Below, in pieces: positions 4,195-52,885 of a stretch of DNA of 64,000 nucleotides. The position numbers and the translations under genes were made by a program. Position 1 is the first letter of the stretch; each line of letters begins with the position of its first letter. The DNA lies in NCBI GenBank assembly GCA_048013815.1, contig CM106586.1, positions 8,370,001 through 8,434,000 of the forward strand, read 5' to 3'. The notes below the pieces were generated by a model that saw only the letters and a program-made list of their open reading frames with translations, made no database searches and was not told the DNA's origin. The DNA is from Setoptus koraiensis (Eukaryota; Animalia; Arthropoda).

Positions 4195-7100
4195 CTAATT
4201 TTCTCTTACAAGGATCACCTCGAGTTGTGAATCTTTCAATGGCTGAGTATCTCTACCTATCTCAACAAGATCGCTGACGAATGATCCCGAGAACCTTTCG
4301 ATTGGGCTCTTGATAGTTGAATTGATAAGTGAGATATAAGAGTCAATTATGCGATACAGGTCCTCTGCCGAATTAGTGTCATCATTCCTGACTTGGTAAA
4401 AAATTCGAATTGGATCCGTGGGTGAGAGATGTGATTTTTTTCTTAGTTTTTGAACTCTGTTTATGAATTCACGAGCGAAACCTTCTTCAACCATGGACTC
4501 ATCTGGTCTAATATTGAGTAGAACAACAACCTTTCCGGCGTCCTTAGCTGCATATGTCTGAACCTTATCAGTAGGGGCTTTGACATCTCCAGATCCTGAT
4601 TCACAATCATAAACTAATCTCAGTTCACCCTCGTGTATCTTTTGACCTTTCAGAGTAAAAGTCTCAGGATTTTTTTGATATTCCTCTAGACTTAATTCAT
4701 CCATCTGCTTGATGGCTTCGACGAATCCTTTGGCTTCATTTCTGAGACGAATACCGATCAATCTGGTGTCCGGGTCTGCTTTCAGTTTCACTCCATACTT
4801 TTCTTTATTATCTGTCGTGACCAACTTCTTGACATTGAGCTCTCCCAATATAAATGATTGTAGTTCAGTAACATCATCAGCAACACCCTGATCTCTCGAA
4901 ATAACAATTACTTCTGACAAGGGGTATTTGAGTGGAAGGGTCGTTTTATCTCTGATATATCGACCTAATTCTATCACAGTCTGCATCGTGGAAACTTTTC
5001 TCTCGATGTCTGGATCGATCGCGGACTCAATAACTTCTGGAAGCTGAAGATAGTGAACACTCAGTGTAGCTTCGTTCTGATTTACATCGAGCTTGCGCAA
5101 GTTTTGATAAATTATTTCGGTTATGAATGGAGTGAATGGAGCCATGACTCTAACCATAATTAGTAGTACTTGATACAGAGTGGTGAGAGCTCGTCTACAG
5201 TCCTCAGTACCTCCTTCTCCTTTCAAGCGTCGACGATTCATTCTTACATACCAATTTGTTAAGTTATCCACAAATTTAACCAATCTAGGCACAACCGTGT
5301 AGAGATGATATTTCTTCATTTCAGAATCTACGAATTTAACAAGACTCTGGGTAAATGATATGATCCATCTATCCATTATATTGTCAGATTTAACATCCTT
5401 GGAAATTTTGAAAACTTCTTTTGTTTCCAGTTCAAACATTTGTAAGTTTTGAGTGAAGAAACGGTAAGCGTTGTACCATGGGATAATGACTTCTTTCAAT
5501 ATTTCTCGCACTCCCTCCTCTCGGAATTTCAGATTTTCTGCGCGAACAGCAGGAGATGTGATGAGATATAGACGCAATGCATCAGCTCCATACTTTCCGA
5601 TAACTTCTGATGAGTCAGGGTAATTCTTCTTTCTTTTGCTCATCTTTTGACCATCACCGGCTAGAACTAAACCGTTCACTATCAAATTCTTGAAAGGGGG
5701 TTTCTCGAACAAAGCAGTTGATATTACAAGCAATGTGTAAAACCAACCTCTAGTTTGATCTATACCTTCAGCTATGAAGTCTGCCGGAAAGTTATTTTCA
5801 AATTCTAACTGTCTTTCAAATGGATAATGCTGTTGTGCATAAGGCATTGATCCAGACTCGAACCAGCAGTCAAACACTTCGGGTACCCTTCTAAGAACTC
5901 CTTTGCCCATCTTGGAAGGTATAGTGATGCGATCTACAAACTCTCTGTGTAGGTCTGTGATCTTCACCTCACTGAGCTCTTCAAGCTCTTTAATAGAGCT
6001 GATGCAAACTACTTCTTCACCATCGTCACTAATCCAAACGGGTATCGGAGTACCCCAGTAACGGTTTCTGGAAACTGCCCAATCTCTAGCGTCTTTGAGC
6101 CAGTTAGCGAAACGTCTTTCTTTGACATAACTTGGAACCCAGTAAGTGCTCTGGTTTGTCTCTAATAATTTTGCTTTGAATTGTTCAACACGAATAAACC
6201 AAGAAGGTACTGCACGATAAATTAAAGGCGTATCAGATCGCCAACAAAAGGGGTAACTGTGATTAATTGTGGCATCTTTGAACATCCTGCCTGCTTGTTT
6301 CAAATGTTTGATTATGTTCTTATCAGCATCCTTTATGTATTGGCCGACAAAATCGACCACTGGATCGGTAAATCTGCCTTGAGCATCCAATGGACAGACG
6401 ATTTTGCCATCCTTAGTGATGACTCCATTGGCCAAACAAACACGATTGTCATCTTCACCAAAGTACGGAGCTTGATGAACTATTCCTGTACCGGCATCTG
6501 AGGTTACATAATCGTCGGCAAGAACTTTGAATGCACCAGATTGTTTGAATTCTTTGTAATAATCAAAAAGTGGCTTATACTCTAGTCCCACTAATTCGGA
6601 TCCCTTGAATTTCCTTAGAATTTTGTAATTAGTTTGATAGTTCTTTTTTAGCACAGCTTCTAATCTACTCTCCAGAAGTATGTATAGAGCTTTGGTTTTG
6701 ACATCCTCTATTTCTACATAATCAAGATTAGAATTGCAGCATAAAGCTAAATTTGAAGGTAGTGTCCATGGTGTAGTCGTCCAAGCTAACAGATGCCTAT
6801 TACTTTCGACGCCGTTTGAGATTATTGGAAATGATACAGTGACAGCTGGATCTGAAATTTCCTTATAATTTTGGCCACTCTCAAAATTTGACAACGGTGT
6901 CGCACAAGCTGTTGAGTAAGGCATAACTTTGAAACCCTTGTAGACAAGATCCTTTTTGAATAGCTGGCTGAACACCCACCAAACAGACTCCATAAATTGT
7001 GGATACATGGTCTTATAATCATTCTCAAAGTCGATCCATCTTCCCATACGTTTGACTACTTTGACCCATTCAGAGGAGTATCGCATGACAATTTTACGAC

Positions 7101-37422: not shown

Positions 37423-39066
37423 TTAGATATCTAAATGACGGTATACTCTTCTCAATTTTTCCTTCTTTTTGTGTTTTTTGTTCGCATGAGGCACATCCGT
37501 TATCGTTCCAAGGGGCTTGGTCATATTACCTATGCCAGGTAGACCTTTATAATGTACATGTGGTGGATTGAACTCAACGTTGAAATCACGATTAGCGAAC
37601 TTGCCGGAAGCTTGCGCCATTAGTCTCCCCTGGCGCTCTGTCATTCTTAAAGCTGAACTAAGATTGCTAGAAAGTTCTTTGATTCTGTCGGGAACAAAAA
37701 ATTGGTGGAATTCCTTTTGATCTACCCCAGGAGGCGCATGACAATATAAAAGTTTACCCTTAACATAGTCTTTGAGGATCCTTCTAGCAGCCCTCGCAAC
37801 ATCTGGTAAGCCGCGTTGAGTCATGTATCCTCGCATAAATCCGTATGAGTTCAGAAGGTCGTCGCTGCTAACATCCTGACTCGCGTTTTGCTCAAAGGCC
37901 AATCCATATATATCTTCAAATACATGTCTAGGTATCTGACTAACAAGAACATCCATGGCAGTCATATGATCTTTCATTTGATCGATGGGCAAAACACCAT
38001 TGACCAACATGTCCGCCTTGCTCATAACCAGATTTGGGAACACTAAACCGGGACAATCACACAATGTGAGTGTTTCGTCTATAATGAATGTCTGGAAGTG
38101 CTTGGTCTTGCCGGGTGTAGCTGAAACCCCAGTTTTCTTGGCCGATAAGAGCGCATTGATTGTTGAGGACTTTCCAACGTTTGGATATCCAACAAGACCC
38201 ACAGTGACACGATAATCTTCAGGATCAGGATCCTCCTGTATAACTTTGTCTTTTTGTTCGATTGCCATCTGTTTCCATAACTCGAGCAGCTCCTTCTTAT
38301 TGTAAAGTTTTATCTTGACATCATCATCACCAGGGCTTTGATCGATATCACTTTCTTTGAGGGGTTCTTTCTGTTGAAGAGCAGAAAAGAAGATAGCTCT
38401 AATGGATCTCTTTTCGAAGTATTCTGACCAATATTTTCGCTGTTCATCATTCAAAAAGTCAGCTTTGTTCAGAAGAATAGCATTTAATTTGGTCTTGTGC
38501 TCTTTAACATAATTAACCAAGTCTTCACAATAATACATTAGAGGATTTCTGGAGTCTACTATTTGAACAACGAGGTGACTTCTCTCTACCACTCGCCAAA
38601 GTTGTCGCCACAATTCCAGATTTTTCTCAAATGGTGTCATCATAACGTTGCTGTTCTCTTGAAGCATCGCCAGTTTCTTCCTCCATTCAAGAAAGTGTTT
38701 CTTCTCTAGTTCGCACAATTGTTCTGGTGTGGTGGTTGAGTCCCATTTAGGTCGTCTGGGTACACACAAGATAGACTTGAATTGCTCTCTATCTATGGTT
38801 GCCGCCTCATGGTGATACTTTTCTTGATCTTGATTTTTGATCAGAGAAATATCTCGTTTCTCCGCTATGAATTGTTTGCCGGCCAATTCAGCGATCTCAA
38901 AGAATTCATCAACAGTGGATTGTGCCGTCAAGCTACGCAAATTAGATTCTGGGTTTTGGTTGGCCAATTCTGTTGTATGTCTGTCGCTCTTATTGCCAAA
39001 TCCAATGGTTTTGTTTGATCTGTGTAGGGCTCGGCCGAGGCCTGCCTTTTTGTTCGGATTTACCAT
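37423..39066 (-). CDS. LSG1: Large subunit GTPase 1 homolog (circularly permuted GTPase)
   Basis: TPFEKNLELWRQLWRVVERSHLVVQIVDSRNP, G4 NKAD, G1 GYPNVGKSS, SATPGKTKHFQT, G3 DCPG and AARRILKDYVKGKL. ATG at 39066. Confidence 0.96.
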   Translation of the reverse strand: MVNPNKKAGLGRALHRSNKTIGFGNKSDRHTTELANQNPESNLRSLTAQSTVDEFFEIAELAGKQFIAEKRDISLIKNQDQEKYHHEAATIDREQFKSILCVPRRPKWDSTTTPEQLCELEKKHFLEWRKKLAMLQENSNVMMTPFEKNLELWRQLWRVVERSHLVVQIVDSRNPLMYYCEDLVNYVKEHKTKLNAILLNKADFLNDEQRKYWSEYFEKRSIRAIFFSALQQKEPLKESDIDQSPGDDDVKIKLYNKKELLELWKQMAIEQKDKVIQEDPDPEDYRVTVGLVGYPNVGKSSTINALLSAKKTGVSATPGKTKHFQTFIIDETLTLCDCPGLVFPNLVMSKADMLVNGVLPIDQMKDHMTAMDVLVSQIPRHVFEDIYGLAFEQNASQDVSSDDLLNSYGFMRGYMTQRGLPDVARAARRILKDYVKGKLLYCHAPPGVDQKEFHQFFVPDRIKELSSNLSSALRMTERQGRLMAQASGKFANRDFNVEFNPPHVHYKGLPGIGNMTKPLGTITDVPHANKKHKKKEKLRRVYRHLDI

Positions 39067-39172
39067 TATTACGTCAGTTATGGATGATATCAATATATGC
39101 TCAAACTATTTGATTCGGACAAGATTTCATTATCCCACATGCAATTCGGTTATTTTAGTTGCTTTGTTTTGA

Positions 39173-39432
39173 ACATGTTTTTCGGGGCATGCACAAATGA
39201 ATAGACTGCGGACAGGAGCACTCCCATGCTGATTCCAAAGGATATAGTTTGCAACAGAAGCACTGTATTTGATTTTATTGGGTTCATTACCCAGTCTGTT
39301 TCCCATTTTTATTTCACACCCTGTGCTGAGACATGTGCTGCCTCCCATTGACGGAAGATCGCACTCCTGACGAGCGTGAGGAGCTCTGTAAGGAGTGCGA
39401 TCTCCATCTGTGAGAGCGGTGGGCACGTGTCC
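39173..39432 (-). ncRNA. Candidate structured ncRNA (long hairpin, H/ACA-like layout)
   Basis: A 13-bp perfect inverted repeat (39356-39368/39391-39403) extends to an imperfect ~100-nt stem at 39330-39431. On the minus strand it is followed by AAATAA (39314-39309), a second pairable domain and ACA (39178-39176). Strand and class are uncertain. Confidence 0.35.
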
Positions 39433-39524
39433 TTAGATTATTGTCATCGTAGATTTTCTCGTTACATTTATTATAAGCTTATTACTAGAAATATAAGTAT
39501 GTCATCAGAGATAAAACCATATCT

Positions 39525-39962
39525 ATGATAGGATGGAACCGTCTCTCGTGTTTCATCAGGCCCATAACAACTAGCTCAGTGAACGTAGGAAACCAAAGGA
39601 GCACCAAGAGAAGGGAGGCCTTACCCCTTCTTCTGGTTGCCAGACCAGTATCGTGTCTATAATAACGAGAACATCAGACATGCAAATAAGCAATTTATCG
39701 AGGAGTTCATTAAGAACAAATATTCTTTGGAGAACAATGAGACACCGCTGAAGGTTGAAGGATGGGCAAACGATGATGCGTTTGATGATGAAACAACGAG
39801 ATGTGGCTTACTGAGCCGAAAGATCTGTGTTTATTCCATGTAGACAAAAACCGGTAAACGATTACTAACAACGCTATTGCAAGCATCCGAGAACCATGTA
39901 ATCAAATATCATGCTCTGGACGATTGGCAAAAGATTTGTAGACCGTTTGATCGCGAAAAAAG
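39525..39962 (+). pseudogene. MRPL3: Mitochondrial ribosomal protein L3 5' fragment with frameshift and nonsense codon
   Basis: Conceptual translation MIGWNRLSCFIRP..(1-nt frameshift ~39611-39618)..PYPFFWL..FIEEFIKNKY..RCGLLSRKICVYSM*TKTGKRLLTTLLQASENHVIKY resembles the uL3m motif R.GL...K.GM..MW.K.G....TLLQ..D.HV.KY; TAG at 39841-39843 replaces the Trp codon. Confidence 0.8.
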
Positions 39963-40108
39963 CAAAGAAGCTTCTATCATCCGTCTAATACAGATAGACG
40001 ATGGCAGGGTAGACTTCAACAATTCCTATGTAAACTACCAGCTTGTTTTATTAGTCGGGTATATCGTGAACGATATAAAAAACAAACATGGACCGATACT
40101 GAAACGCC
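39963..40108 (+). pseudogene. PSME4: Proteasome activator PA200/Blm10 internal fragment
   Basis: A frame not shown in the ORF track reads SFYHPSNTDRRWQGRLQQFLCKLPACFISRVYRERYKKQTW, matching the conserved PSME4 segment SFYHPSN.G.W...L..L...LP.....R...ERY. No start, no stop, abutted by other gene fragments. Confidence 0.8.
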
Positions 40109-41084
40109 TATCCTTGGTTTATTCCATTTATATGTTGCGGAGGAGGTGGGTCCCAGAATATCTTGATGGCTGTAGAGTTCAGCGCCTCAGCCACGACTCT
40201 TTGGGGAGACTTATCCGGTTTACCTTCTTTTGTTCTGACGCAGGTGCTTGAACTGAATGGACCTACACCTTTTTCGTTCGCTGCTGCAACTTGAATCTCG
40301 TAATTTTGCCATACAATCAGATCATCCAATGTGTAATGCAATTGACTTGCGATGGTCACCTCGTGATCGTACCATTGTTGTATACCCTCATAACCTGCCA
40401 ACCTATGATGTATCTTGTATCCGACCAGCTGACCATTTTGAGTATCATCTGGAGGTGGTGACCAATTTATTGTGATGGAATTTGACGATCTTGGTGCTCC
40501 CACGACATTCAAGGGCGGCGCACTGGGTGGTTGAGCAGGAATTTCTATCGGAATTTTGGTCTGTTCGCTAGGCTCACCAGTTCCAACTTTATTGGTTGCC
40601 CTCACTCTGAAGACGTACTTCTTGGCAGGTTTGAGGTTAGATATAATTACGCTAGTATGATCACCTGATATATTCAATGGGACCATTTCCCATGATGCAG
40701 CAATATCTGTATCTGGATTTTTGATGTCAGGTATGGTGCGCATTTCAATATGGTAACGTATTACTGGGCTGTTGCCATCGAAACCGGGCACCCAGTACAC
40801 TCGTATGGCTGGTCCTTCTCCATCAGAAAGCTCCGCATTTATTTGACTTGGAGGTAGAGGCAATTGTAAGATACTAAGCTCAGCCGATCTAGAATTCTGC
40901 CGTCGAACCCATCACAACTTGTTGAGGCTGTGGGTAATCTCTGAACAAGGCTCGCGAATTTTCTGTCTGTGCTGGTTCGGGGGGAACTGTCGATGTCGAT
41001 CCGATGTTAGTGGATGCTGGAATGAATTTCTCACAAATAAAACTTCTCCTCAGATTTGAATCAAACATAGGTATCAAACCAAAC
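40109..41084 (-). pseudogene. Duplicated Sidekick fragment with 185-bp internal deletion
   Basis: 40109-40895 = 50904-51690 and 40893-41084 = 51873-52064; 7 substitutions in 976 bp by manual comparison; AAT microhomology at the deletion. Confidence 0.97.
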
Positions 41085-41097
41085 CTTTGGCTAAGGT

Positions 41098-41840
41098 CTA
41101 GTTGACTAATGCAACTTTTATTTTATTTTCTTTTGTCACAGGTTCTTTCTGTTCTTTTGTTTGTTCAGGCGTATCAGGTGCAACATCTGGAAGCTGGAGC
41201 TCACTTATTCCTGCTTTCTGTTCTTTTGTCCTTTCAGGCGTGTCAGGTGCGACATTTGGAAGCTCGAGCTCACGCCTCTCTTCAAGTTCCTCCATGAGCT
41301 CTTTTTCATCATAGCTCCCTCTCAATAAGCTGGATATCTCCTTTTGTTTAGCTGCAGCCTCTTCATTCTCTTCTAATATTTTCTGAATATTTTCTACCGA
41401 CATCATGTCCTGCAGCTGTTTGAGTTGATCATTGGCCAATTTGATGCCTTCGAATACACTGATCTGATTTTGACGATCTTCAATATCCTGCACGAGTGTC
41501 TCTAATGTTAATAATTGCCCGTCAGTCCTTTTCAAAACTTCTTCCATATTTTTCTTCTTCCTAAGTATGACTAGAGCTCTCCTGAAGAAAGAAGCAAAAT
41601 ATTAGTAATTTAGTAAATATAATATCAGTAATCAATTTGAAATGTGCATGTGTATACTTACTCTTTCATATTCTTATTTAATAATTCTATAGCTAAACGT
41701 TTCTCCTCTTCCAGTTTTGACTCTATTCTGTTCTGATAAATTTTGATCCTATCCCTCAAATGCTTCACTTGCAAGATGGCACGATCCGTGGGTGTCACAG
41801 TCACCGCTGGGGCTCGTTTGAATGTAAATAGATTGCCCAT
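41098..41840 (-). CDS. CHMP6: ESCRT-III CHMP6/Vps20; exons 41840-41662 and 41581-41098 (220 aa)
   Basis: Myristoylation-type start MGNLF, TDRAILQVKHLRDRIKIYQ, spliced MKE|RALVILRKKK (GT 41661, AG 41582; 80-nt intron), QLLTLETLVQDIE and a C-terminal LPxV-P motif. Confidence 0.92.
41145..41273 (-). repeat. 69-bp in-frame tandem duplication in the CHMP6 C-terminus
   Basis: ELELPNVAPDTPERTKEQK and ELQLPDVAPDTPEQTKEQK; units start at 41145 and 41214. Confidence 0.92.
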
Positions 41841-41892
41841 ATTTGATTGTTTTGGTTGAAATAACAAATACCAAATACACAAATATCTACGA

Positions 41893-42143
41893 ATGTGAGA
41901 CAACAACATTCTTCATTCCCAATAGCAAACTCGACACACACACACACACACACACACACACGGGCACACGCACACTCACAAACAAACGACCACATCGATG
42001 GAAAGACAGACAGTACTAGCATTGTGTGTAACACTACTGTGTAATACTGTAGCAACAGTGGTTTGGGGTAGTATGTTTATTCTGTTGGTGACTTTACTAG
42101 TGTTGTGAGCTGTAGTGTAAAGATATAAGACTCACACAACGCA
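41893..42143 (+). repeat. Non-coding direct repeat A, copy 1 (contains (CA)n)
   Basis: Aligns to 45399-45674 with about 7 substitutions, a (CA)n length change, a 6-nt indel and an 11-nt deletion with AAA microhomology. Confidence 0.95.
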
Positions 42144-43144
42144 CTTTTTGATTATTATATAGAATTCAAACAATCTGGTGCATTCAAAGTTCTTGCCGAC
42201 GATTATGTAACCTCAGATGCCGGTACAGGAATTGTTCATCAAGCTCCGTACTTTGGTGAAGATGACAATCGTGTTTGTTTGGCCAATGGAGTCATCACTA
42301 AAGATGGCAAAATCGTCTGTCCATTGGATGCTCAAGGCAGATTTACCGATCCAGTGATCGATTTTGTCGGCCAATACATAAAGGATGCTAATAAGAACAT
42401 AATCAAACATTTGAAACAATCAGGCAGGATGTTCAAAGATGCCACAATTAATCACAATTACCCCTTTTGTTGGCGATCTGATACGCCTTTAATTTATCGT
42501 GCAGTGCCTTCTTGGTTTATTCGTGTTGAACAATTCAAAGCAAAATTATTAGAGACAAACCAGAGCACTTACTGGGTTCCAAGTTATGTCAAAGAAAGAC
42601 GTTTCGCTAACTGGCTCAAAGACGCTAGAGATTGGGCAGTTTCCAGAAACCGTTACTGGGGTACTCCGATACCCGTTTGGATCAGTGACGATGGTGAAGA
42701 AGTAGTTTGCATCAGCTCTATTAAAGAGCTTGAAGAGCTCAGTGAGGTGAAGATCACAGACCTACACAGAGAGTTTGTAGATCGCATCACTATACCTTCC
42801 AAGATGGGTAAAGGAGTTCTTAGAAGGGTACCCGAAGTGTTTGACTGCTGGTTCGAGTCTGGATCAATGCCTTATGCACAACAGCATTATCCATTTGAAA
42901 GACAGTTAGAATTTGAAAATAACTTTCCGGCAGACTTCATAGCTGAAGGTATAGATCAAACTAGAGGTTGGTTCTACACATTGCTTGTAATATCAACTGC
43001 TTTGTCAACCAACAGAGAAACCCCCTTTCAAGAATTTGATAGTGAACGGTTTAGTTCTAGCCGGTGACGGTCAAAAGATGAGCAAAAGGAAGAATTACCC
43101 TGACTCATCAGAAGTCATCGAAAAGTATGGAGCTGATGCATTGC
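42142..43144 (+). pseudogene. Inverted duplicate of an IleRS internal segment (editing domain to KMSK)
   Basis: Reverse complement of 5574-6572 with about 13 substitutions, a TC to CAACCAACA replacement (43006-43014, frameshift) and a 3-nt deletion in KMSKRKK; no start codon context. Confidence 0.97.
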
Positions 43145-43338
43145 TGGTTGCATAAATTGTGATTGATTTCCTCCCCGTTGGGCCTGCATGAGCTGCATGC
43201 CTCCTCCGTTCATCATTTGATTGTTTGCCTCGAGCATACCCATAAATGGTGCAATGGGTCAAATGGGCCATGGCTCATACCGCTCAGGTCTCCGAATGGC
43301 ATCATCATAGAGCGCATCATGTTATCCATGTGATCCAT
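43145..43338 (-). pseudogene. Met/Gly-rich N-terminal gene fragment, MLF (myeloid leukemia factor)-like, frameshifted and truncated
   Basis: MDHMDNMMRSMMMPFGDLSGMSHGPFDP, then after a 1-nt shift (~43252-43256) APFMGMLEANNQMMNGGGMQLMQ, ending at the IleRS fragment. The family call rests on composition and the HMxNMMxSM pattern only. Confidence 0.4.
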
Positions 43339-44482
43339 TGTAGCAAAATTTAATTTGTTGTTACAGGCTGTTGATAATTTAAAAATTGATGGCTGGCGTG
43401 ATTGAATGATAATTGAATGTGGCAGCTGGATAAATATACGACGTGATAGATTTGAGTGATAATTAATTAGGTCCAATGCGTCCGTTTAATACAATAGCGT
43501 ATTCATATGCTAGGCACGACAATAAAAATGTTGACACGAATTTTCCCGAATGCGCAGTACTGTGCATATATAACTGGCACTCGATCACGAGGAATATAGA
43601 TATCTGCAGATTGATTGAGAAAAATTGGGCTTAATAGTCGACATCCGATCAGTTGAAAACATTTGATAGTGACATGTTGTTACAGTTTTCGATTCACAAC
43701 TTGTATTCATTTGCCAATGTGATGGGATGGTTCACCTGGGCTACCCTATCGCAAATATGCGGGCCGCTTGCAGCTGCTGTTGTTGGAAATTGGACTCTAC
43801 AAATGTTTGCCTCTGTTGGTCGGATCGGGTGATTACCCTTCATCAACCAATCGCAATCGCACCAATTTGCCTCAGAGAGTTTGTTGCGTTGATCGACAAA
43901 TACAAGTTAGCAAAGACAACTATTCATTGATGACACACCACATATAAACATACTGTATTGTAAAGAAGTGTCATTCACGCTCATACTCTGTCTACACGGA
44001 ATAGAATGCCATCAACAAACAATATGCGACGAGGTTAGGTCGAAACTTTGGATTATAGGACAGGTTATTCAACTTGTATGTGCGTTTGTTTGTTTTTGTA
44101 AATGTTATTTATTCAAATGCTCTCGCTAATCAGTTTAATCACTGGCAAGGTTACTAGTCATGAATCGGCTAAAAATAAAAGGCCATCACACTTGATTTTG
44201 GCAATTTACGTCTACTTGTGGACTGACCCAGATCGTAACTTGCCTACATTGCAAGCTGCGATGCTTTGTTCTTGCGTCGGTGGCTGTTGTCGTTGGCCTC
44301 CAACAACAAAGGAAGACATCCTTATTTCGTCGCAGTTCTTACTCTATTCTGCGTTTGTTTCAAGTCCAAGGTATCAAAAAATGAAGTTGACAAAAGTTTG
44401 ACTGCCTAGAGAAGCGGTGAAAAAGTTGACACATTGAATCAATCTGATACCATCCAGTGTCTGTCTGCGATATCTCATGTTG

Positions 44483-44514
<32 letters not shown>

Positions 44515-45398
44515 AGTGCACAGAAGAAATTTCGTGCCGCCCAATATCCGGTAAGCTTAAGTAGTGGTGTGCTTAGTCATAATCTGGGATGTGGAGTAGA
44601 GAGACAGAAAGATAGAGATCATGGGACAATGATTCTCGTTGGCCATCTCTCGAGCTGGGCAGGGTTTTTACTGTGATGAGATCACCGTCATGACATCTGC
44701 TCGGCGGCGACATTTATGCCGGGCAAGGTTTTGTAGGCGGCTTCAGAGTGTATTCTGCATGCGAATGCTAACTCGGCTCAATACACGGCATGTAACGGCA
44801 TCAATTGATTGTTTGTGTGAAACTGTTAGACCGTCGCATCGACCGTCTGACTGACTCATACTACTCACACGGCCGAAATGTGTCGAAAGATGTTTTATCC
44901 ATTGTCCTCTCGACGAGGATCTCATCCGGAAAGTTGCATAGATGGCGAGAGCGCGATGATTAGGCTCTTTTATCGCACCCTATGTATGTGTATGTATATA
45001 TACACTATGTGTCCTTTGTCGATCAATAAGGATAAACAGCCTGACTTGCTGATCGAGCCACCCAATCTTAATGATGACAAATGCGCACAGAATACATTAG
45101 ATCGTAGGGAGGTTACGTACGTAGATCTTACTCAAAAGTGTGTAGATAGTAAAATAAGGTGCGCAGACAATGACACAAACAGCAAGGTTCGCAAGGTATA
45201 AGAATGATGCAAATATAATAAAAATAATAATGATAACAATTCTAGAGAAACAATGATGATAGCAATGGTGTAATGATGATATAGCCAGTATATACTTTAT
45301 ATATACCAAGGTGCAGTGATGAGATGGATTAATGACAATTATTAGTGCGTTTGGCACCATCCAGTCTGGTGTGTTTGTGCGCATGAGTAAGGTTGTGT

Positions 45399-45438
45399 AT
45401 GTGAGACAACAACATTCTTCATTCCCATTAGCGAACTC

Positions 45439-45489
<51 letters not shown>

Positions 45490-45674
45490 GCACACGCACA
45501 AACAAACGAACACATCGATGGAAACTACGCATAAAGACAGACAGTACTAGCATTGTGTGTAACACTACTGTGTAATACTGTAGCAACAGTGGTATAGGGT
45601 AGTATGTTTATTCTGTTGGTGACTTTACTAGTGTTGTGAGCTGTAGTGTAAAGATATTAGACGCACACAACGCA
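45399..45674 (+). repeat. Non-coding direct repeat A, copy 2, upstream of Lst2
   Basis: Same alignment as 41893-42143; contains the (CA)n array at 45439-45487. Confidence 0.95.
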
Positions 45675-46338
45675 GTGAGTGTGCAATAAATTCAGCTGAT
45701 AATATTTTACACACAACGTAATGCTGCTGTACCAGTAGATTGTTTCTCTTCTTCAATATTAATGGTACTCGATGAATCTGCTATACACAATATAAATTGT
45801 TGTCTAGATGATCGATTTACTATTTGCTGATATATATATTATCAATATCAACACAACAATAAAGACATTTCGACCATAAAATATTATCACAATAAAATAG
45901 ATAGAATTATTGTAAGAGAACTATTTGATTTGTTACGAAACCAACAACAATATTCAACAACAATATTTCATTTTGGCCTCTCCTCCTCATTGCACAACAA
46001 TCACGACTACAGCCAGGATATCATAATAATACTTAAATGATATACTAACGGTGACGCAAACAACGCGGTACAAACGACGACGACGACGACGATCACACAA
46101 GCCCATCACCATGATTTGTGGTCGTTTTTTTTGAGAGGCTCAAAAACAAAAATAATTATCAATCCATATACATTATTAGCATTATTATTGTTAGATCCAT
46201 TATCATCTAAAAAAACTACCATCATCGTTGCAACGATTTTTTCCCTCTATTATAACGAAAAAATACAACAACATATAACACAACCTTAGCATCTTTATCA
46301 GACAAGAAACAACAATATAACTAGTATAGGACGCAACC

Positions 46339-47973
46339 ATGCTTAGGCGATCATCAAGACCAAGAAATTTGACATTATCAAAAGTAAATCACTGCAGTAG
46401 CGATTCGCTAGTTCGTCTCTACCATGCTGACGCGGAACTCAAAGCCATATCCAACGAATTGGACTCTTTCGATGGTAAAAAAGATCCCGTCCGATGCAAT
46501 CTTCTTGTGAACCAATTGAGGACGGCCCAAGATAAAGTTATTAGCCTACTGTTTCAACTGATGGACGAATGTGGATGTGAGCGGGCCTCGCGCGACTACA
46601 GAATGAAATTCCCTGATGAGATACTGCTGACCGAAGGCTCAGAATCACTCAATGGACAAATCTGGTTTGGTGCCGAGTGCCTATCTGCTGGATCTAACAT
46701 TCTTAACCACCACAAAGAGTCCACCATGCTTAGACCAATGGCAAAAACACTGACCACTCATTTGGACTCTTTGCGAACAGAACTGAGAGAGTTAGTCACC
46801 GATGGATGCAGCATCGCTCGAATAGGCAATAGTTTAATCAAAAAGATGGTCTCTTTTGACCACATATTCGCGACATTCGAATATGAATACGTTCGTACAA
46901 TGCTACCCATAAGAACAGTCGAGGAGATAGAAAAACTGCAAGAGGTCGCTGTTCTATTCAGTGAAACTCTCATTGAATGTGTAAAACGAAAGCTTATCAA
47001 AGAAGAAGACATAGCGGAATTTGAGCCCATAGTTATGATTGCTATACCAAGATTAGCTATTGTTCGAGGACTTCTATACGAAAATGAAAATCCAATTTAT
47101 ATGACAAATAAGAGCAAGATGTCTACTCTTTTCCAACCTTTTCATGGACCTCTTAAATCAATAAGGAAACTACTCAAAGATTTACAGCCAAACGAACTAT
47201 TCATGCTGGAGAAGATGCTAGCAAATGATGAGACTGCTGATGAAAGCAATTCAGTTGCTACAGTAAAAACTGGCCAACAATTAAACGAAAACAATATAAT
47301 GCAGCAACAAGAATTGAATGAATCACTGATGAACGAAATGTTACCTGAAACACCCGAGGATGCTGCCTTCAAGGACTTGTTGTTTAGACAATCTCAGCAA
47401 TTATTACATAGGCTCTTTGTTGCCATTTCTGGTGTTGCTGATCAGCTACAATCCAATTTCGCTAGTGACCTCAGATTTATTCTAAAACACATATTTAGCT
47501 CTGAGTTAAATGGAAAAAATGAAGACGAAGATATCAACTCTCAATCACCCGATAGTCAACCACCAATTGAAGAGGCAGTGGAGGTTCAAGAAATCCCTAT
47601 TGCCACTAATGAAACTAGAGACTTAAATGGCGCATCTAGCTCACCTGACGAACATCAACGTAATTTGAATCATAGCGTTTATAGTGAAGCCCTTGATCGA
47701 CAATCGTCTAGAAGACGTTCTAGAAATTCTTCTAATCGCAATAGAGGAATATTGCACGGACCTCCGATATGGGTACCGGATCAGTTGGCTCAGACCTGTA
47801 GTTGTTGTGATATTGGTTTTAATATATTCAGGCGTCGTCATCATTGTCGAAATTGTGGTCAAATATTCTGCGGCGATTGCTCTAAATATACCATGATTAT
47901 CCCCAGATGGGGCTACAATGGTCCAGTGAGAGTTTGTGAGTCGTGCTACTCCTCGAGAGCCATCGATATGTAA
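46339..47973 (+). CDS. ZFYVE28: Lateral signaling target protein 2 homolog, intronless
   Basis: ELDSFDGKKDPVRC..LVNQLR.AQDKV, RASRDYRMKFPDEI and QIWFGAECLSAGS; C-terminal FYVE WVPD..C..C...F...RRRHHCRNCGQIFC..CS...RVC..CY. Confidence 0.95.
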   Translation: MLRRSSRPRNLTLSKVNHCSSDSLVRLYHADAELKAISNELDSFDGKKDPVRCNLLVNQLRTAQDKVISLLFQLMDECGCERASRDYRMKFPDEILLTEGSESLNGQIWFGAECLSAGSNILNHHKESTMLRPMAKTLTTHLDSLRTELRELVTDGCSIARIGNSLIKKMVSFDHIFATFEYEYVRTMLPIRTVEEIEKLQEVAVLFSETLIECVKRKLIKEEDIAEFEPIVMIAIPRLAIVRGLLYENENPIYMTNKSKMSTLFQPFHGPLKSIRKLLKDLQPNELFMLEKMLANDETADESNSVATVKTGQQLNENNIMQQQELNESLMNEMLPETPEDAAFKDLLFRQSQQLLHRLFVAISGVADQLQSNFASDLRFILKHIFSSELNGKNEDEDINSQSPDSQPPIEEAVEVQEIPIATNETRDLNGASSSPDEHQRNLNHSVYSEALDRQSSRRRSRNSSNRNRGILHGPPIWVPDQLAQTCSCCDIGFNIFRRRHHCRNCGQIFCGDCSKYTMIIPRWGYNGPVRVCESCYSSRAIDM

Positions 47974-48283: not shown

Positions 48284-51200
48284 TTATACAAATGACGTGA
48301 ATCCGGGCAATGGAGCGCGACTTCCAGCCATATTATCTACAATAATTCTTCCACCGTTAAGATTAACGATTGGACTTTCTAATGCGTCTTTTTGACCTTC
48401 ATCCTCAGTTGTTGTTTTGGCGTTCGATCTATCGGTTGAGTCATAGTCCGCCATTTGTCCCGAAGTGTTTCCGTTAGTTAATGCATTGCTTGATGAGGTC
48501 CCCGGCATGTTCGGAACAAGAGGTATTGATGGAGCTGAGCGTTGGGGCAATTTTGGTTTAGTCTTTCCGCCAACCACGTACGATTTAGCATTCTTCTTCC
48601 AGCCAGCAGTTTGCTGACCACCTCTCAAGGTTCCGTTTACATTGGCATAGTGATTGACAAAATGCTTATTTGCCATATTTACATACTCATCATCCTGTTC
48701 AGAATCAGATTCATCCTCAGGACCAGTACTACTAATCTCACTAGGTTTTTCGGTTAGACTCTCTCCGCTGCTGTCATAATTGGATAAAGCATTTGTCATA
48801 CCTTTGGGGGCAGGCGAGTCCTCGAAAACATCGTCATCCCCTTCTTCATCCGAGTAAGCAACGGACCCGGGATGAGGCCGAGGCGGTGATTTCAAGGTAC
48901 CTAGTCCGTTGACATTCGAAGAGAGAGTAGCATTACTACGACGATGTGATTGTGCAGAATTTTGTGCTAGAAGACCAAAGCCAGGATTGTAATTGTTATC
49001 ATGGTCGTCTATGGTGAATCCAGCATCACCAAGTCTATCTTGGCTTGAACATGATTTAATTGCTTCTTGTTGATATTTGTAACTCTTATTCTGAATGAAA
49101 AGTATCGCTGTTATAATGATGGTGATAACAATACTGAGACACGCGCATAATATCACGAACCAACTCTCACGATAAAATGGCAATGTAACTCTCAGCTCTA
49201 AGTCGGTTGTATAGACTGCAATTGTTGCTGGTGCTCCCCATCCTTCTTTAGTTTTAGCCATTACATTGAATAAGTAATGCTTGTATGGTTCTAAATTGGA
49301 CACTTTCAAAGATCTTTCACCACTTGATAGTTCTTGGGCTGCTAGCTCTTTACTGTTTGGTGCATAGAGTCTATAAGAGACAAGATAGTTTAATATCTCG
49401 CCGTTGGGATTATCTGGTACATCCCATAATATCCTAGCACTAGTCTTAGTCACGGTAGGGTAGGATAGATTCGTTGGAGGGCCTGGCGTTCCCTCTAGTG
49501 TTTGAATATTCAGTACACTACTATAAATTCCGTCCCCGACTGAAGTAACGGCACATATTGCTAAATTGTACATCGTATAGGGTGTGAGGTCACTCAGAGT
49601 TGTTCGTTGCTGCTCAGTTGCATTCGATGAAATAAATTTTTGCTTGGACTCTGACAAAGAAGAATGATGATACCTAATCCTGTATCCTTGAATGACACCG
49701 TTCCTATGAATTTCGGGAACTGGTTCCCAATCTAATTGAATGGAAGTTGGTGTCAGAGAAACGCCGTTAAAGTTTGTGGGGCTTGCTGATGGTACATCCT
49801 CTAAAGTCTTTTCCGTGACCCTGCTAACTGAGCTAGGTCCGACGTCATTCAATGCACATATTTTTATAACATATTCAGTGAACTCCTCTAGATTTTGAAT
49901 TACAAAATCTTCAGCAGATGCATCGATAATGATGGACGAATTTGTTGTTGCGGCCAAGTGTTCAACTGGAGACCAAGTGATATTGTAACCTCGTGGATGG
50001 CCCCTCCAAGCAACTAGTGGAAGAGGAACCCACTGCAGTCTTATAGAGGTAGAGGAGGAACTCTTCGCTTTGAATGCCTCGGGTGGTCTTTCGGGTTGCA
50101 TCTGTAATGTTTGGAAGTCAGGCGATGGACTCGATGGGTTTATACTTCTGCCTACAACATTGGCTGGAATTAAACGAATCCGATATTTGGTAAATGGAAG
50201 AAGATTTCTGACGACGACTGCATCGGCCTGGGTATGATTTGTCGAGACGTAAACTTGTTCCCAAACATTGCTCTGATCTACAATTTGAGCTTCTGCTATC
50301 CATTTTTCTATCGATGCATTCCCATCGAATCCGGGTTTGAATTGGATCATCACCGAAGTTGGGCCGATATTTGAGTACGCTAGGTTGCTGGGTGGTAGTG
50401 GGAGAACAGGTGGTATACTGGTCTGAGTTTGATTTATTTTTACCGGACCCTGACCCATGGCAGTGTGTGCATAGATCCTAAACACATACGGTGTCTGTGG
50501 AGTTAGATCCACAATCTTGGTCTCTAAAACATCGGCAGGAAACTCCCTTGAAATCTTGTTATCCGTGGCTGATGCTTCATAGTATTCTAAAGTATAGTGA
50601 TCCAATAAACCATTAGCCTGTTTCGGAGGTTTCCACAAAATTTTTAGGCTTTTATCAAGAACCTCAGCAAACTCCAGAGATTGAACAGCCTCTGGTATAT
50701 CCTGCTTAGTCTTCACTATAACTACGTTGTCATTTGTAGGACCGTCACCGGCACTGGTAAAACAAGAGACAGATATGTAATAATCCGTGAATGGTGTTAG
50801 ATTATCCATCACATAAGAATGTGTTGATGGAACCGGATTGGGTGTTACAGTGTGCTCTCTCGCTAGCTTAGTTCGAGATGAGTCGTACCATGCTTGCACG
50901 TTATATCCTTGGTTTATTCCATTTATATGTTGCGGAGGAGGTGGGTCCCAGAATATCTTGATGGCTGTAGAGTTCAGCGCCTCAGCCACGACTCTCTGGG
51001 GAGACTTATCCGGTTTACCTTCTTTTGTTCTGACGTAAGTACTTGAACTGAATGGACCTACACCTTTTTCGTTCGCTGCTGCAACTTGAATCTCATAATT
51101 TTGCCATACAATCAGATCATCCAATGTGTAATGCAATTGACTTGCGATGGTCACCTCGTGATCGTACCATTGTTGTATACCCTCATAACCTGCCAACCTA

Positions 51201-52885
51201 TGATGTATCTTGTATCCGACCAGCTGACCATTTTGAGTATCATCTGGAGGTGGTGACCAATTTATTGTGATGGAATTTGACGATCTTGGTGCTCCCACGA
51301 CATTCAAGGGCGGCGCACTGGGTGGTTGAGCAGGAATTTCTATCGGAATTTTGGTCTGTTCGCTAGGCTCACCAGTTCCAACTTTATTGGTTGCCCTCAC
51401 TCTGAAGACGTACTTCTTGGCAGGTTTGAGGTTAGATATAATTACGCTAGTATGATCACCTGATATATTCAATGGGACCATTTCCCATGATGCAGCAATA
51501 TCTGTATCTGGATTTTTGATGTCAGGTATGGTGCGCATTTCAATATGGTAACGTATTACTGGGCTGTTGCCATCGAAACCGGGCACCCAGTACACTCGTA
51601 TGGCTGGTCCTTCTCCATCAGAAAGCTCCGCATTTATTTGACTTGGAGGTAGAGGCAATTGTAAGATACTAAGCTCAGCCGATCTAGAATCGCGTCCTTG
51701 CGAAGGCGAGTGAATCGTACAGGTATAATTTCCAACATCTCCATTTCGAACCTGCTCTATTCTAAGTGTTCCATCCACCATCTTGATTCTACCAGAGTTA
51801 GTAGGCAATGTAAGATTTTTTCCGTTGAACAACCAATTGACTGCACTATCATCGAAAAGAGGTTTACATTTAAATTCTGCCGTCGAACCCATCACAACTT
51901 GTTGAGGCTGTGGGTAATCTCTGAACAAGGCTCGCGAATTTTCTGTCTGTGCTGGTTCGGGGGGAACTGTCGATATCGATCCGATGTTAGTGGATGCTGG
52001 AATGAATTTCTCACAAATAAAACTTCTCCTCAGATTTGAATCAAATATAGGTATCAAACCAAACTTTTTTCTTGATTGAGATTGAGAATAAGCAAAAGTT
52101 GAGGGCCTCGATGTGTTATTGGTGCTGTAATCCTCCAGCCAAAAATCAGAAAATGAGTCTGAATCTACATTAGGCTCATTTCTATCTACTCTACTCAAAT
52201 ACGATGCCATCAGTTCTTTGCTCGGCATAATATACCAAACTTTGTTGGCTGTTGAGTTCTTCTCTAACCATCTTGTTACAAACTCATGCTTTTCTTCACC
52301 ATCGAGAGCTATCAGATGAGAGTCCCATTCTTCGCATTTTGTCTTGGCACTCTCAAATGATTTTGGGTTTGATTGAAACTTATAGCAGCCTGAGTGATAT
52401 GGCATCCAGGAAGGTTTGCAATCAGAATGTTGCTCTTGTGCATATGAAACCACAGTGCCTAAAGCAAAGAGAATCAAAACAATTGTGCTAATGTTTAACG
52501 ATAGATTCCTAAATTGGTTTATCACAGAATCCTTAAGAGTAGCCCCACGAGCTCTCTTGCCATAGGAAAAAACTAACGCAGATACAGGCCCATGTGGCAG
52601 ATGTCGCCCTGGATGATGTTGAGCATTGTATGCATTGGTAGTGGTTGGAATGAGATCTGAGTTGAACGAAAGAGGTATCATGTCATCAGTATTTGATGTA
52701 TATGAACAGAATTGATGATTATCATAATAGCTATCTCTGTGAGTTGGGGTATTGATCAGCGGCCTTATCTCGCCAAGATTGCATGGAGTGCTTGAGATCA
52801 GTGTAAGTTTATCCGGATCAATGAGAGTATTGTTTCTATTCCTGGGGATCATCATGTTGCTTGTTCCACGAGTCATGATGGCCAT
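48284..52885 (-). CDS. sdk: Sidekick-derived adhesion molecule: C-type lectin + 1 Ig + 8 FN3 + TM + Sdk tail; intronless, 1533 aa
   Basis: The FN3 series matches Sdk FN1-8 (PGFDGNSP, QPPSAPP..RSS, INGINQGY, PGFDGNASI, RNGVIQGY); TM LPFYRESWFVIL; PDZ-binding end APLPGFTSFV. N-terminal CTL CKPSW..YHSGCYKF...F..A...C...DSHL...SFICE. Confidence 0.9.
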   Translation of the reverse strand: MAIMTRGTSNMMIPRNRNNTLIDPDKLTLISSTPCNLGEIRPLINTPTHRDSYYDNHQFCSYTSNTDDMIPLSFNSDLIPTTTNAYNAQHHPGRHLPHGPVSALVFSYGKRARGATLKDSVINQFRNLSLNISTIVLILFALGTVVSYAQEQHSDCKPSWMPYHSGCYKFQSNPKSFESAKTKCEEWDSHLIALDGEEKHEFVTRWLEKNSTANKVWYIMPSKELMASYLSRVDRNEPNVDSDSFSDFWLEDYSTNNTSRPSTFAYSQSQSRKKFGLIPIFDSNLRRSFICEKFIPASTNIGSISTVPPEPAQTENSRALFRDYPQPQQVVMGSTAEFKCKPLFDDSAVNWLFNGKNLTLPTNSGRIKMVDGTLRIEQVRNGDVGNYTCTIHSPSQGRDSRSAELSILQLPLPPSQINAELSDGEGPAIRVYWVPGFDGNSPVIRYHIEMRTIPDIKNPDTDIAASWEMVPLNISGDHTSVIISNLKPAKKYVFRVRATNKVGTGEPSEQTKIPIEIPAQPPSAPPLNVVGAPRSSNSITINWSPPPDDTQNGQLVGYKIHHRLAGYEGIQQWYDHEVTIASQLHYTLDDLIVWQNYEIQVAAANEKGVGPFSSSTYVRTKEGKPDKSPQRVVAEALNSTAIKIFWDPPPPQHINGINQGYNVQAWYDSSRTKLAREHTVTPNPVPSTHSYVMDNLTPFTDYYISVSCFTSAGDGPTNDNVVIVKTKQDIPEAVQSLEFAEVLDKSLKILWKPPKQANGLLDHYTLEYYEASATDNKISREFPADVLETKIVDLTPQTPYVFRIYAHTAMGQGPVKINQTQTSIPPVLPLPPSNLAYSNIGPTSVMIQFKPGFDGNASIEKWIAEAQIVDQSNVWEQVYVSTNHTQADAVVVRNLLPFTKYRIRLIPANVVGRSINPSSPSPDFQTLQMQPERPPEAFKAKSSSSTSIRLQWVPLPLVAWRGHPRGYNITWSPVEHLAATTNSSIIIDASAEDFVIQNLEEFTEYVIKICALNDVGPSSVSRVTEKTLEDVPSASPTNFNGVSLTPTSIQLDWEPVPEIHRNGVIQGYRIRYHHSSLSESKQKFISSNATEQQRTTLSDLTPYTMYNLAICAVTSVGDGIYSSVLNIQTLEGTPGPPTNLSYPTVTKTSARILWDVPDNPNGEILNYLVSYRLYAPNSKELAAQELSSGERSLKVSNLEPYKHYLFNVMAKTKEGWGAPATIAVYTTDLELRVTLPFYRESWFVILCACLSIVITIIITAILFIQNKSYKYQQEAIKSCSSQDRLGDAGFTIDDHDNNYNPGFGLLAQNSAQSHRRSNATLSSNVNGLGTLKSPPRPHPGSVAYSDEEGDDDVFEDSPAPKGMTNALSNYDSSGESLTEKPSEISSTGPEDESDSEQDDEYVNMANKHFVNHYANVNGTLRGGQQTAGWKKNAKSYVVGGKTKPKLPQRSAPSIPLVPNMPGTSSSNALTNGNTSGQMADYDSTDRSNAKTTTEDEGQKDALESPIVNLNGGRIIVDNMAGSRAPLPGFTSFV

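Follow-up and report, generated by a model that had tools for sequence, protein, structure and literature searches.

In the present study, we analysed a 64-kb stretch of the genome of Setoptus koraiensis (the window), an eriophyoid mite with a streamlined genome of 32 Mb. The transposable-element content of eriophyoid genomes is about 1.5% (PMC7738191). Between positions 39498 and 43701 of the window, copied segments of 141-1003 bp, placed in both orientations, flank an intact CHMP6-like gene on both sides. The copied DNA adds up to about 3.4 kb and comes from at least six other genes or loci. Three donors, one of them copied inverted, lie inside the window at distances of 3.5, 11 and 36 kb, and at least three further source loci, the parents of the MRPL3, PSME4 and MLF-like pieces, lie beyond its 64 kb. 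The features of the locus and of its donors are as follows:

5574..6572, minus strand: IleRS donor stretch, within an intact 1090-aa IleRS gene (4195-7467)
37423..39093, minus strand: LSG1 (large-subunit GTPase 1), single exon, native left flank; Pfam MMR_HSR1, homologues named LSG1
39151..39464, no strand: native LSG1 upstream/promoter stretch, homologous to 3959-4202 of relative L001, directly upstream of LSG1
39465..39497, no strand: 33 unattributed bases that separate the MRPL3 piece from the native promoter; the match to the paralogue contig ends at 39464
39498..39967, plus strand: MRPL3 (uL3m) pseudo-fragment that comprises roughly the first 147 codons, preceded by about 27 nt of 5' leader
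39968..40108, plus strand: PSME4/PA200 internal fragment, equivalent of human residues about 339-385; parent outside the window
40038..41097, minus strand: probable CHMP6 3' UTR, formed by both Sidekick pieces in sense orientation and by 71 nt of the PSME4 piece in antisense
40109..40895, minus strand: Sidekick-like piece A (end of an Ig domain and FN3 1-3), copy of 50904-51690; Pfam fn3
40893..41088, minus strand: Sidekick-like piece B (lectin-like/Ig linker by the donor domain map), copy of 51873-52068
41098..41840, minus strand: intact CHMP6-like gene of the Snf7 (ESCRT-III) family, 220 aa, two exons; Pfam Snf7, spliced ORF
41893..42143, plus strand: copy of non-coding repeat A; native copy at 45399-45674
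42142..43144, plus strand: internal IleRS fragment, inverted copy of 5574-6572; Pfam tRNA-synt_1
43141..43701, minus strand: MLF-like 5' gene part, identity putative; Met/Gly/Gln-rich N-terminus and about 360 nt of upstream DNA
45399..45674, plus strand: native repeat A, situated upstream of LST2 and donor of the copy at 41893-42143
50904..52068, minus strand: Sidekick-like donor stretch, within an intact 1533-aa gene (48284-52885)

The earlier note had described at least six captured pieces around an intact gene, and this patchwork was confirmed by self-BLAST, homology matches and read contigs; its extent (39525-43338) had to be corrected to about 39498 on the left and about 43701 on the right. 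At the left end, the MRPL3 copy is collinear over 39637-39840 and 39844-39966 with residues 62-128 and 132-170 of protein P0001, a uL3m with an E-value of 1e-47 against solved mitoribosomes. The identification as an MRPL3 5' part therefore stands, with the start moved to about 39498 and the end to 39967. The copy is disabled by a TAG stop at 39841-39843 and by a 1-nt frameshift near 39615 relative to the parent contig (record 19 of data set X3), whose match begins at about 39499. It has diverged from this parent, which lies outside the window, by about 7-10%, as against 0.6-3% for the remaining pieces. The PSME4 assignment also holds, since 39960-40115 matches human PA200 residues 339-379 (PDB phmmer, E 4.8e-8), but the piece measures 141 bp and not 146 bp; its parent contig has a loose end just before 39968. 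A donor for 39465-39497 was sought within the window and none was found.

The two Sidekick-like pieces come from a single donor with order and orientation kept. Piece A shows 5 differences in 787 nt (99.4% by self-BLAST) and piece B is 98.5% identical to 51873-52068. The 182 donor bases between the two stretches are missing from the copy, and they are not an intron because they lie inside the continuous 1533-aa ORF. In the right cluster, the IleRS copy is 97.3% identical to its donor (15 substitutions, an 8-nt insertion and a 3-nt deletion), and the repeat A copy differs from 45399-45674 by 9 substitutions, a CA-repeat length difference and an 11-nt indel. These values agree with the three in-window donors of about 97-99% identity reported earlier. 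The 45.4-kb repeat A is the native copy, since its position is conserved in relative L002, where 348-1124 aligns to 45327-46142; its native status was absent from the earlier note. Both in-window donor genes, IleRS (1090 aa) and Sidekick-like (1533 aa), have kept full reading frames. The MLF-like piece carries a 1-nt deletion frameshift near 43252. A parental locus outside the window is confirmed by read contigs (X6 record 31 and X3 record 23, with loose ends at 43141 and 43701), so the piece ends at about 43701 and not at 43338. The MLF identity itself could not be confirmed: there was no Pfam match at E up to 0.1 and no related Atlas cluster, although this is a weak test with queries of 26-46 aa of low complexity.

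The gene between the two clusters is complete. It encodes a 220-aa protein with the N-terminus MGNLF and a Snf7 domain (E 2e-13), and its Atlas matches are exclusively Snf7 clusters. The 80-nt intron at 41581-41660 was confirmed by a spliced RNA contig, and the gene is expressed and single-copy (1x DNA depth). The claim of an intact CHMP6 amid fragments is thus upheld at the level of the Snf7 family, and we take the gene to belong to the CHMP6/Vps20 subfamily from the N-terminal MGN myristoylation motif only. Foreign DNA begins about 10 nt past its stop codon and 52 nt ahead of its ATG, and the repeat A copy sits where the CHMP6 promoter would be expected. The CHMP6-like gene may be native at this site or may itself be a relocated piece.

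Throughout this study, the read evidence consists of contigs of 31-mers from public short-read runs. Every junction is carried by such contigs in up to four public data sets from different studies, one RNA run among them. With 0-1 mismatches, contigs of X6 bridge junctions over 40038-40895 and 40866-40992, those of X1 and X2 over 41036-41925 and 39747-39997, and those of X3 over 40893-41925 and 42097-43222. The depth in X1 was about 220-260 across the pieces, compared with about 110-130 over CHMP6 and on either flank. This twofold depth against single-copy flanks indicates that each piece occurs twice in the genome and that the mosaic is homozygous, which is the outcome of the donor-versus-copy depth check proposed earlier, with unique parts at single-copy level. 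The MLF-like piece has a depth of 2-3x, rising to about 3x at 43500-43683 in X1.

The X6 RNA contigs at 40038-40895 and 40866-40992 have 0 mismatches and a depth resembling that of the CHMP6 exons, and a minus-strand AATAAA was read from the sequence at 40047-40052. The Sidekick pieces are probably the CHMP6 3' UTR, in sense to Sidekick, and we infer one continuous transcript from these contigs. In the one RNA data set, the portion of the MRPL3 piece beside the LSG1 promoter (39636-40003) had a depth of 0, and nothing in the RNA contigs pointed to transcription entering the mosaic from the LSG1 side. IleRS and MLF-like sequences appeared in the same RNA as donor or parent variants only. The proposal of a multi-target antisense or siRNA source driven from the LSG1 side is not supported by these results or by the sense orientation of the Sidekick pieces. 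The gene pieces are dead fragments and the mosaic is mostly inert.

The left cluster lies at a lineage-specific synteny breakpoint, because two relatives carry a DRG GTPase gene beside LSG1 and the window does not. This gene is 0.8-2.5 kb from LSG1 in L001 (87% nucleotide identity) and in L003/L004 (about 50% amino-acid identity), and no DRG gene was found in the 64-kb window. LSG1 itself is 87% identical to that of L001 at the nucleotide level, and the opposite side of LSG1 is conserved, with Ssu72, a choline transporter and p450. The breakpoint, too, had not figured in the earlier note. The LSG1 promoter stretch, which holds a CACGTG box and a 110-nt hairpin at 39326-39436 (fold z-score -6.0), has a second genomic copy, as seen from about 2x depth, a diverged paralogue contig and, in three runs, a loose contig end at 39464.

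Four of the eight junctions were resolvable, with 0, 3, 2 and 4 shared bases. The MRPL3/PSME4 junction is blunt (0 nt), and microhomology was found at Sidekick A/B (AAT), repeat A/IleRS (CA) and IleRS/MLF-like parent (TTGC). By our own calculation, the chance that at least three of four random joins reach at least 2 nt is about 0.013. Classical NHEJ can also leave overlaps of 0-4 nt, and replication-based and end-joining routes look alike. Compared with what had been noted before, AAT and CA were recovered, TTGC was added, and neither the AAA microhomology nor the small templated insertions could be reproduced. An MMBIR/FoSTeS or end-joining origin, as first suggested, therefore keeps the support of copying, intact donors and 2-4 shared bases at three of the four junctions, and loses that of the templated insertions.

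Several observations point to copying at the DNA level. The CHMP6 gene has kept its intron, the MLF-like piece continues for about 200 nt past the stretch of its parent that is covered by RNA, repeat A does not code for protein, and poly(A) tracts are absent. A processed retrocopy was rejected on the same grounds. We consider it probable that the mosaic is the scar of a transposon-independent copy-and-paste repair in the germline, by MMBIR-like switching or by multi-fragment end joining. After the lineage had split from the sampled relative, the old LSG1-DRG neighbourhood would have been broken inside the shared promoter, and about 310 bp of the LSG1 promoter would have come to exist a second time at another place. 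A copied chain of MRPL3, PSME4 and Sidekick twice may then have linked the broken LSG1-side end with the 3' end of the CHMP6-like gene, and a second chain of repeat A, inverted IleRS and MLF-like DNA would have been placed 52 bp upstream of its start codon. Serial template switching in break-induced or stalled replication (MMBIR/FoSTeS) would yield such a chain, and the same picture would arise if several copied fragments were end-joined at a single break. The Sidekick pieces were then apparently recruited as the 3' UTR of the sole CHMP6 gene. The repair pathway and the number of events are inferred, and a single event is not established, because the divergence is uneven (MRPL3 about 7-10%, the others 0.6-3%); MRPL3 is perhaps an older insertion or a product of error-prone synthesis.

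Among the other explanations, the one that survives best is a fragile or tolerant intergenic site at which several separate break-repair captures (NHEJ or alternative end joining) took place over time. The greater divergence of the MRPL3 piece, with its stop and frameshift, against 0.6-3% in the Sidekick, IleRS, repeat A and MLF-like pieces would fit such a history, as would the working gene that separates the two clusters, the one blunt junction and the strong hairpin (z -6) 30-140 bp left of the mosaic, which is possibly break-prone. However, five pieces share a compatible low divergence, fitting one or two events, and independent captures free of spacers under strong deletion pressure are less economical than a chain. 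Moreover, Sidekick A and B from one donor, with order and orientation kept, point to one synthesis tract with a jump. We regard stepwise capture as unlikely on balance, although given the divergence of MRPL3 a standing scrapyard that is still collecting pieces is possible.

The capture of cDNA fragments at breaks, or an RNA-templated repair product, linked to reverse-transcriptase-mediated intron loss, is a weaker candidate. Transcribed genes account for five of the six donors, the start of the MRPL3 piece about 27 nt before its ATG is roughly that expected of an mRNA, and intron loss of this kind has been proposed for eriophyoid mites (PMC7738191). However, no piece end carries a poly(A) tract, repeat A is barely covered by RNA, the MLF-like piece goes past the RNA coverage of its parent, and CHMP6, if it is a piece, retains its intron. 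The in-window donor genes IleRS and Sidekick-like are intronless, so the intron-loss test cannot discriminate here, and about half of the genome is exonic, hence mostly exonic pieces are unsurprising. Taken together, this route appears improbable.

Alternatively, a non-autonomous transposon that captures genes (Pack-hAT/Pack-MULE or Helitron) could have carried the mosaic as its cargo, with ends that have decayed or escaped notice. Such elements yield similar multi-gene mosaics, Helitron-like sequences have been reported in an eriophyoid genome (PMC7738191), and the threefold depth at 43500-43683 hints at a short repeated stretch. Nevertheless, the scans for terminal inverted repeats (TIRs) were empty at the outer, left-cluster and single-piece boundaries. 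With 12 nt and up to 2 mismatches, no match was found between 39440-39530 and 43640-43780 (shuffles average 0.17), and a wider scan gave one chance-level 12-mer without a target site duplication (TSD). With 9 nt and up to 1 mismatch, the left-cluster and single-piece boundaries gave none, and the right cluster gave two overlapping matches (41901/43682) inside repeat A and the MLF-like piece, which we read as chance; they are set back from the piece ends by about 9 and 20 nt and have no flanking TSD. The only flanking direct repeat of at least 7 nt was AATGTGA at 41892 and 43716, adjoining no TIR. No Helitron ends were found by eye and by an inverted-repeat scan, which is a weak test as the motif is degenerate; no hairpin adjoins the CTAG at 39485, and neither boundary has a short GC-rich palindrome or a GC-rich hairpin beside CTRR. 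The ORFs scanned held no transposase or reverse-transcriptase domain, and the piece ends had no A/T tracts. The element-independence first proposed thus holds at outer and inner boundaries. Furthermore, three donors within 36 kb are typical of template switching instead, and the block stands at single-copy depth, the same as its flanks, which makes a transposon origin very improbable. Finally, although near-identity to other loci is the situation in which assemblers err, and the support here is short-read contigs, an assembly artefact joining reads of alleles, paralogues or contaminants is largely refuted and hardly credible, as the junctions recur in contigs built independently from up to four runs of four studies, with twofold depth over the pieces and flank-like depth in the unique parts.

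The mosaic therefore looks like an error-prone break-repair scar and not like a mobile element or a new regulatory device. Gene order is very poorly conserved among eriophyoids (bioRxiv 10.64898/2026.08.24.746826). A tentative extension, which we hold possible but doubtful, is that this scrambling arises mainly through replication-based or alternative end-joining repair that habitually pastes fragment chains into breakpoints, with the fillers recruited as UTRs, promoters or chimeric exons, as would apply here to the 3' UTR and the upstream region of the sole CHMP6 gene. If this is true, the locus would exemplify a mutational signature shared across the lineage, which may be linked to an altered set of DNA-repair genes.

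Several known systems resemble this locus. Pack-MULE, Pack-hAT and Helitron mosaics share the mixed-orientation fragments of several genes with little spacer, but here no TIR and TSD or 5'-TC/3'-hairpin-CTRR ends were found, the block is single-copy and donors are local. Staggered breaks leave duplications at inversion or translocation breakpoints, as in Drosophila inversions, and the classical cases are without multi-gene filler. The LSG1 promoter of about 310 bp in two copies, one per new junction as reads indicate, is alike; the multi-gene filler is different, and the second copy is known from reads alone. Capture of fragments at double-strand breaks by end joining is known from the large insertions of Dna2-deficient yeast and from templated-sequence insertions in humans, where 0.1-1.5 kb of distant genes are inserted, sometimes serially, with blunt or microhomology joins and intact donors. 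The segment sizes, serial pieces, joins and intact donors of our locus are similar; those cases, however, are single experimental or polymorphic events, whereas the present mosaic drew on three donors of the same chromosome, all within 36 kb. Since the donors are local and one of them was reused in register, template switching is favoured over such capture. The closest likeness is to the templated-insertion chains of MMBIR/FoSTeS type in human germline CGRs, chromoanasynthesis and cancer genomes (PMC5120786, PMC8421209, PMC13065848), which also bring copies from near and far loci in both orientations to one site, with 0-4 nt of microhomology, no element ends and, as for the in-window donors here, intact sources. 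The present segments are small (0.14-1 kb), one piece is far more diverged and the pathway is inferred, and in contrast to those chains the mosaic has become fixed in an arthropod lineage in nature, at a point where synteny was broken in the course of evolution. It is thus a fresh example of an already known type of rearrangement.

The observation of a gene-fragment mosaic made in the earlier note was right, and the mosaic (about 39498-43701) extends somewhat further than had been given there. Donor-copy pairs in the window were obtained by self-alignment, which confirms three donors inside it, and the parents of the MRPL3, PSME4 and MLF-like pieces are present as separate contigs in the reads.

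Pieces of the mosaic, with their donors or parents
39498-39967, MRPL3 piece; its parent (record 19 of the public sequencing run X3) differs by 29 mismatches and 10 gap letters over 39513-39967 and continues past 39967; divergence about 7-10%, the differences often tightly clustered
39968-40108 (141 bp), PSME4 piece; the match to the parent contig begins at 39968
40109-40895, Sidekick-like piece A, donor 50904-51690; 99.4% identity, 5 differences in 787 nt, all within 100 nt
40893-41088, Sidekick-like piece B, donor 51873-52068; 98.5% identity, 3 differences in 196 nt
41893-42143, non-coding repeat A, original 45399-45674; 9 substitutions and indels in about 250 nt
42142-43144, IleRS piece, inverted, donor 5574-6572; 97.3% identity, 15 substitutions (9 synonymous, 6 not) and two indels in 1003 nt
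43141 to about 43701, MLF-like piece; the parent contig has one extra base near 43252, divergence about 1-2%

In translation, the PSME4 piece clearly matched residues 339-379 of human PA200/PSME4 (E 4.8e-8). The identity of the MRPL3 piece was reached via a search of 1.84 billion proteins, in which 39637-39966 formed two collinear blocks on residues 62-170 of the match P0001, with an in-frame TAG between the blocks. By comparison with solved mitoribosomes (E 1e-47), P0001 is mitochondrial uL3; direct search of the MRPL3 pieces against PDB gave no matches, and the parent has G at 39842, the position of the copy's stop codon. The rightmost piece is a copy of another locus; its earlier assignment to MLF was not borne out, as Pfam and the ESM Atlas returned no matches. 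Between the two Sidekick pieces 182 donor bases are absent, and the skip occurs at an AAT microhomology. Since these bases lie inside a continuous 1533-aa ORF, the skip is a jump or deletion and not a removed intron. The donor Sidekick-like gene (48284-52885) has just one exon, of 1533 aa, and its domains by Pfam are a C-type-lectin-like region, an Ig domain and eight FN3 stretches. The (CA)n microsatellite of repeat A differs in length between copy (41934-41990) and original (45440-45510), and short-read contigs break there. Elsewhere in the window, 51 bp copied from part of the neighbouring Sec1/VPS33-like gene (86%; 21420-21470 versus 23792-23842) lie between two tandem orphan genes, a second case of a small fragment inserted locally.

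The left edge of the mosaic was compared with the contigs of relatives. L001, the LSG1-side contig of a close relative, has 87% nucleotide identity to the window across Ssu72-LSG1, and upstream of LSG1 it carries a conserved promoter stretch matching 39215-39461, followed by a divergently transcribed DRG GTPase gene. In a distant eriophyoid metagenome contig (L003/L004) the order is p450, choline transporter, Ssu72, LSG1, presenilin and DRG; the window has the first four of these in common with it, and DRG and presenilin are absent from the whole 64 kb. The LSG1-DRG neighbourhood is ancestral because it is found in both relatives, and the window's lineage has a break in it at about 39465-39497, exactly where the mosaic starts on the left. 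The last 310 bp or so before the break (39151-39464) have double depth (about 2x), with a diverged paralogue contig departing at 39464, and this fits the trace expected of a duplicative or staggered breakpoint. The sequence that follows the second promoter copy bears a loose resemblance to the DRG-side sequence of L001. A look-up with the relative's DRG protein gave only the same relative contig, and the DRG side in S. koraiensis was not recovered. On the LST2 side, the relative's contig L002 aligns to 45010-49589 with repeat A at its 45.4-kb place, so the copy at 41.9 kb is the derived one; L002 ends at about 44955. The native upstream region of LSG1 also holds a strong 110-nt hairpin (39326-39436, MFE -61.6 kcal/mol, z -6.0) with a CACGTG box, situated 30-140 bp from the breakpoint. 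Its outer arms are partly conserved in L001 and its inner stem is not. An Rfam scan of 36-47 kb found no ribozyme or known RNA at the hairpin and gave sub-threshold miRNA-like matches on a CA repeat only. Possible readings of the hairpin are a promoter element, a precursor of small RNA or a palindrome prone to breakage.

The homologues of two flanking genes place the source of the window among the eriophyoid mites. The best named homologue of the LST2/FYVE gene is from Fragariocoptes setiger, with about 30 further homologues in metagenome and Logan proteins at 70-83% identity, and LSG1 matched mites and other arthropods at 44-46%. CHMP6 exon 2 gave no homologues at E 1e-10, and neither LSG1 nor the CHMP6 exon-2 ORF has an exact match on record in public assemblies. 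The smallest known arthropod genomes are those of eriophyoid mites. The genes of the window are compact and poor in introns; published eriophyoid genomes are about 32 Mb, with transposable elements at about 1.5% and introns absent from more than 80% of the genes (PMC7738191). Very little gene order is conserved in the group (bioRxiv 10.64898/2026.08.24.746826), and despite this the order p450-choline transporter-Ssu72-LSG1 (15009-39093) is kept against L003 at about 50% protein identity. Non-coding identity to the species of L001 is about 70%, and all pieces are far younger than the split from it. The higher divergence of MRPL3 would reflect either an earlier arrival or especially error-prone synthesis.

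The central gene encodes a complete 220-aa Snf7-family protein with the N-terminus MGNLF. A contig of X6, an RNA run, skips 41581-41660 (GT..AG, minus strand); this contig therefore derives from RNA and shows splicing and expression of the CHMP6-like gene. Its coding region contains a 69-bp tandem duplication (41145-41273, 88% identity), by which the motif EL.LP.VAPDTPE.TKEQK at the C-terminus is repeated. In X6, coverage in the copy's own letters also extends over 40038-40895 and 40866-40992, about as deep as over the CHMP6 exons; it ends 9 nt past a minus-strand AATAAA at 40047-40052, and depth is 0 over 39636-40003. Most economically, this coverage would represent a CHMP6 mRNA with a 3' UTR of about 1.06 kb, made up of the two Sidekick pieces in sense and 71 nt of the PSME4 piece in antisense; the reading is drawn from strandless contigs that leave a gap at 40993-41123. 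This reading contradicts the earlier suggestion of a multi-target antisense/siRNA transcript from the LSG1 side. A scan for bacterial-type promoters and terminators around the putative 3' end gave nothing, and is of an irrelevant type for a eukaryote. Over the IleRS and MLF-like pieces, X6 has donor or parent variants alone. An RNA intermediate as the source of the pieces is disfavoured: the start of the MRPL3 piece near its mRNA 5' end speaks for it in that piece only, whereas the CHMP6 intron is kept, repeat A is non-coding and the MLF-like piece holds upstream DNA without RNA coverage.

For the junctions, Logan contigs from four public runs of four studies were aligned to 38900-44400, and overlaps were scored only at the four junctions where both partners are known.

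Junctions, with shared bases and supporting contigs
39967/8, MRPL3/PSME4; no shared bases; X1 and X2, 39747-39997, only as a spanning k-mer with 30 nt to the right, under the 31-letter bridging rule
40108/9; X6, 40038-40895, 0 mismatches
40895, Sidekick A/Sidekick B; AAT, 3 nt; X6, 40866-40992, only as a spanning k-mer with 30 nt to the left
41088 and 41892/3; X1 and X2, 41036-41925; X3, 40893-41925
42142/3, repeat A/IleRS; CA, 2 nt; and 43144, IleRS/MLF-like parent; TTGC, 4 nt; X3, 42097-43222 for both

By our own calculation, overlaps of at least 2 nt at three of four junctions have about a 1% chance for random joins. Small templated insertions, also claimed earlier, were not found, since 11-mers of the unassigned stretches matched the window at chance level only. 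Scans for TIRs and TSDs were negative at the outer boundaries, the left cluster (MRPL3 to Sidekick B) and single pieces; in the right cluster (repeat A to MLF-like) the TIR scan gave just two overlapping 9-nt matches inside pieces, which we read as chance. Neither a poly(A) tract nor a Helitron-like hairpin-CTRR end was found. A transposon as carrier of the mosaic thus has no support, and its description as element-independent and joined by microhomology stands. The sole flanking direct repeat, AATGTGA at 41892 and 43716, is suggestive of a possible mark of the right cluster's entry into the CHMP6 upstream region; with this cluster removed, the proposed insertion site would read ...CTACGAATGTGATGGG... 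In X1, LSG1, CHMP6 and the right flank have a depth of about 110-130 and the pieces one of about 220-260; therefore two copies of each piece exist in the genome and the mosaic is at full dosage, which rules out a chimera of alleles or contaminants. The MLF-like upstream stretch 43500-43683 has about 3x depth in X1 and may have more than two genomic copies, and a contig form without 17 nt (43557-43573) occurs in X1 and X2.

Taken together, the sequence evidence points to error-prone copy-and-paste repair, not mobile elements, behind this breakpoint, in which a chromosomal break would have been repaired by serial template switching or multi-fragment joining. Several points fit such a repair origin: the donors are intact and lie partly within 36 kb, the orientation is mixed, one donor was used twice in register with a jump, the overlaps are 0-4 nt, element ends are absent and the synteny break is derived with a duplicated edge. 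To the question of how eriophyoid chromosomes are reshuffled with few transposons, this locus contributes a dated, base-resolved and lineage-specific breakpoint. The Sidekick scraps in the inferred CHMP6 3' UTR further suggest that breakpoint filler can become part of an essential gene's transcript. The mosaic may be one instance of a genome-wide habit, which if true is a more interesting claim than the single locus, and a junction census across the genome could yield a mutational signature for streamlining and scrambling. New here are the taxon, the breakpoint in synteny, the direction in which repeat A was copied, and the Sidekick scraps as probable 3' UTR of the single CHMP6 gene. The locus alone is a good natural example of a known rearrangement process and no new mechanism, and the mosaic falls in the class of MMBIR/FoSTeS complex rearrangements, that is, templated-insertion chains.
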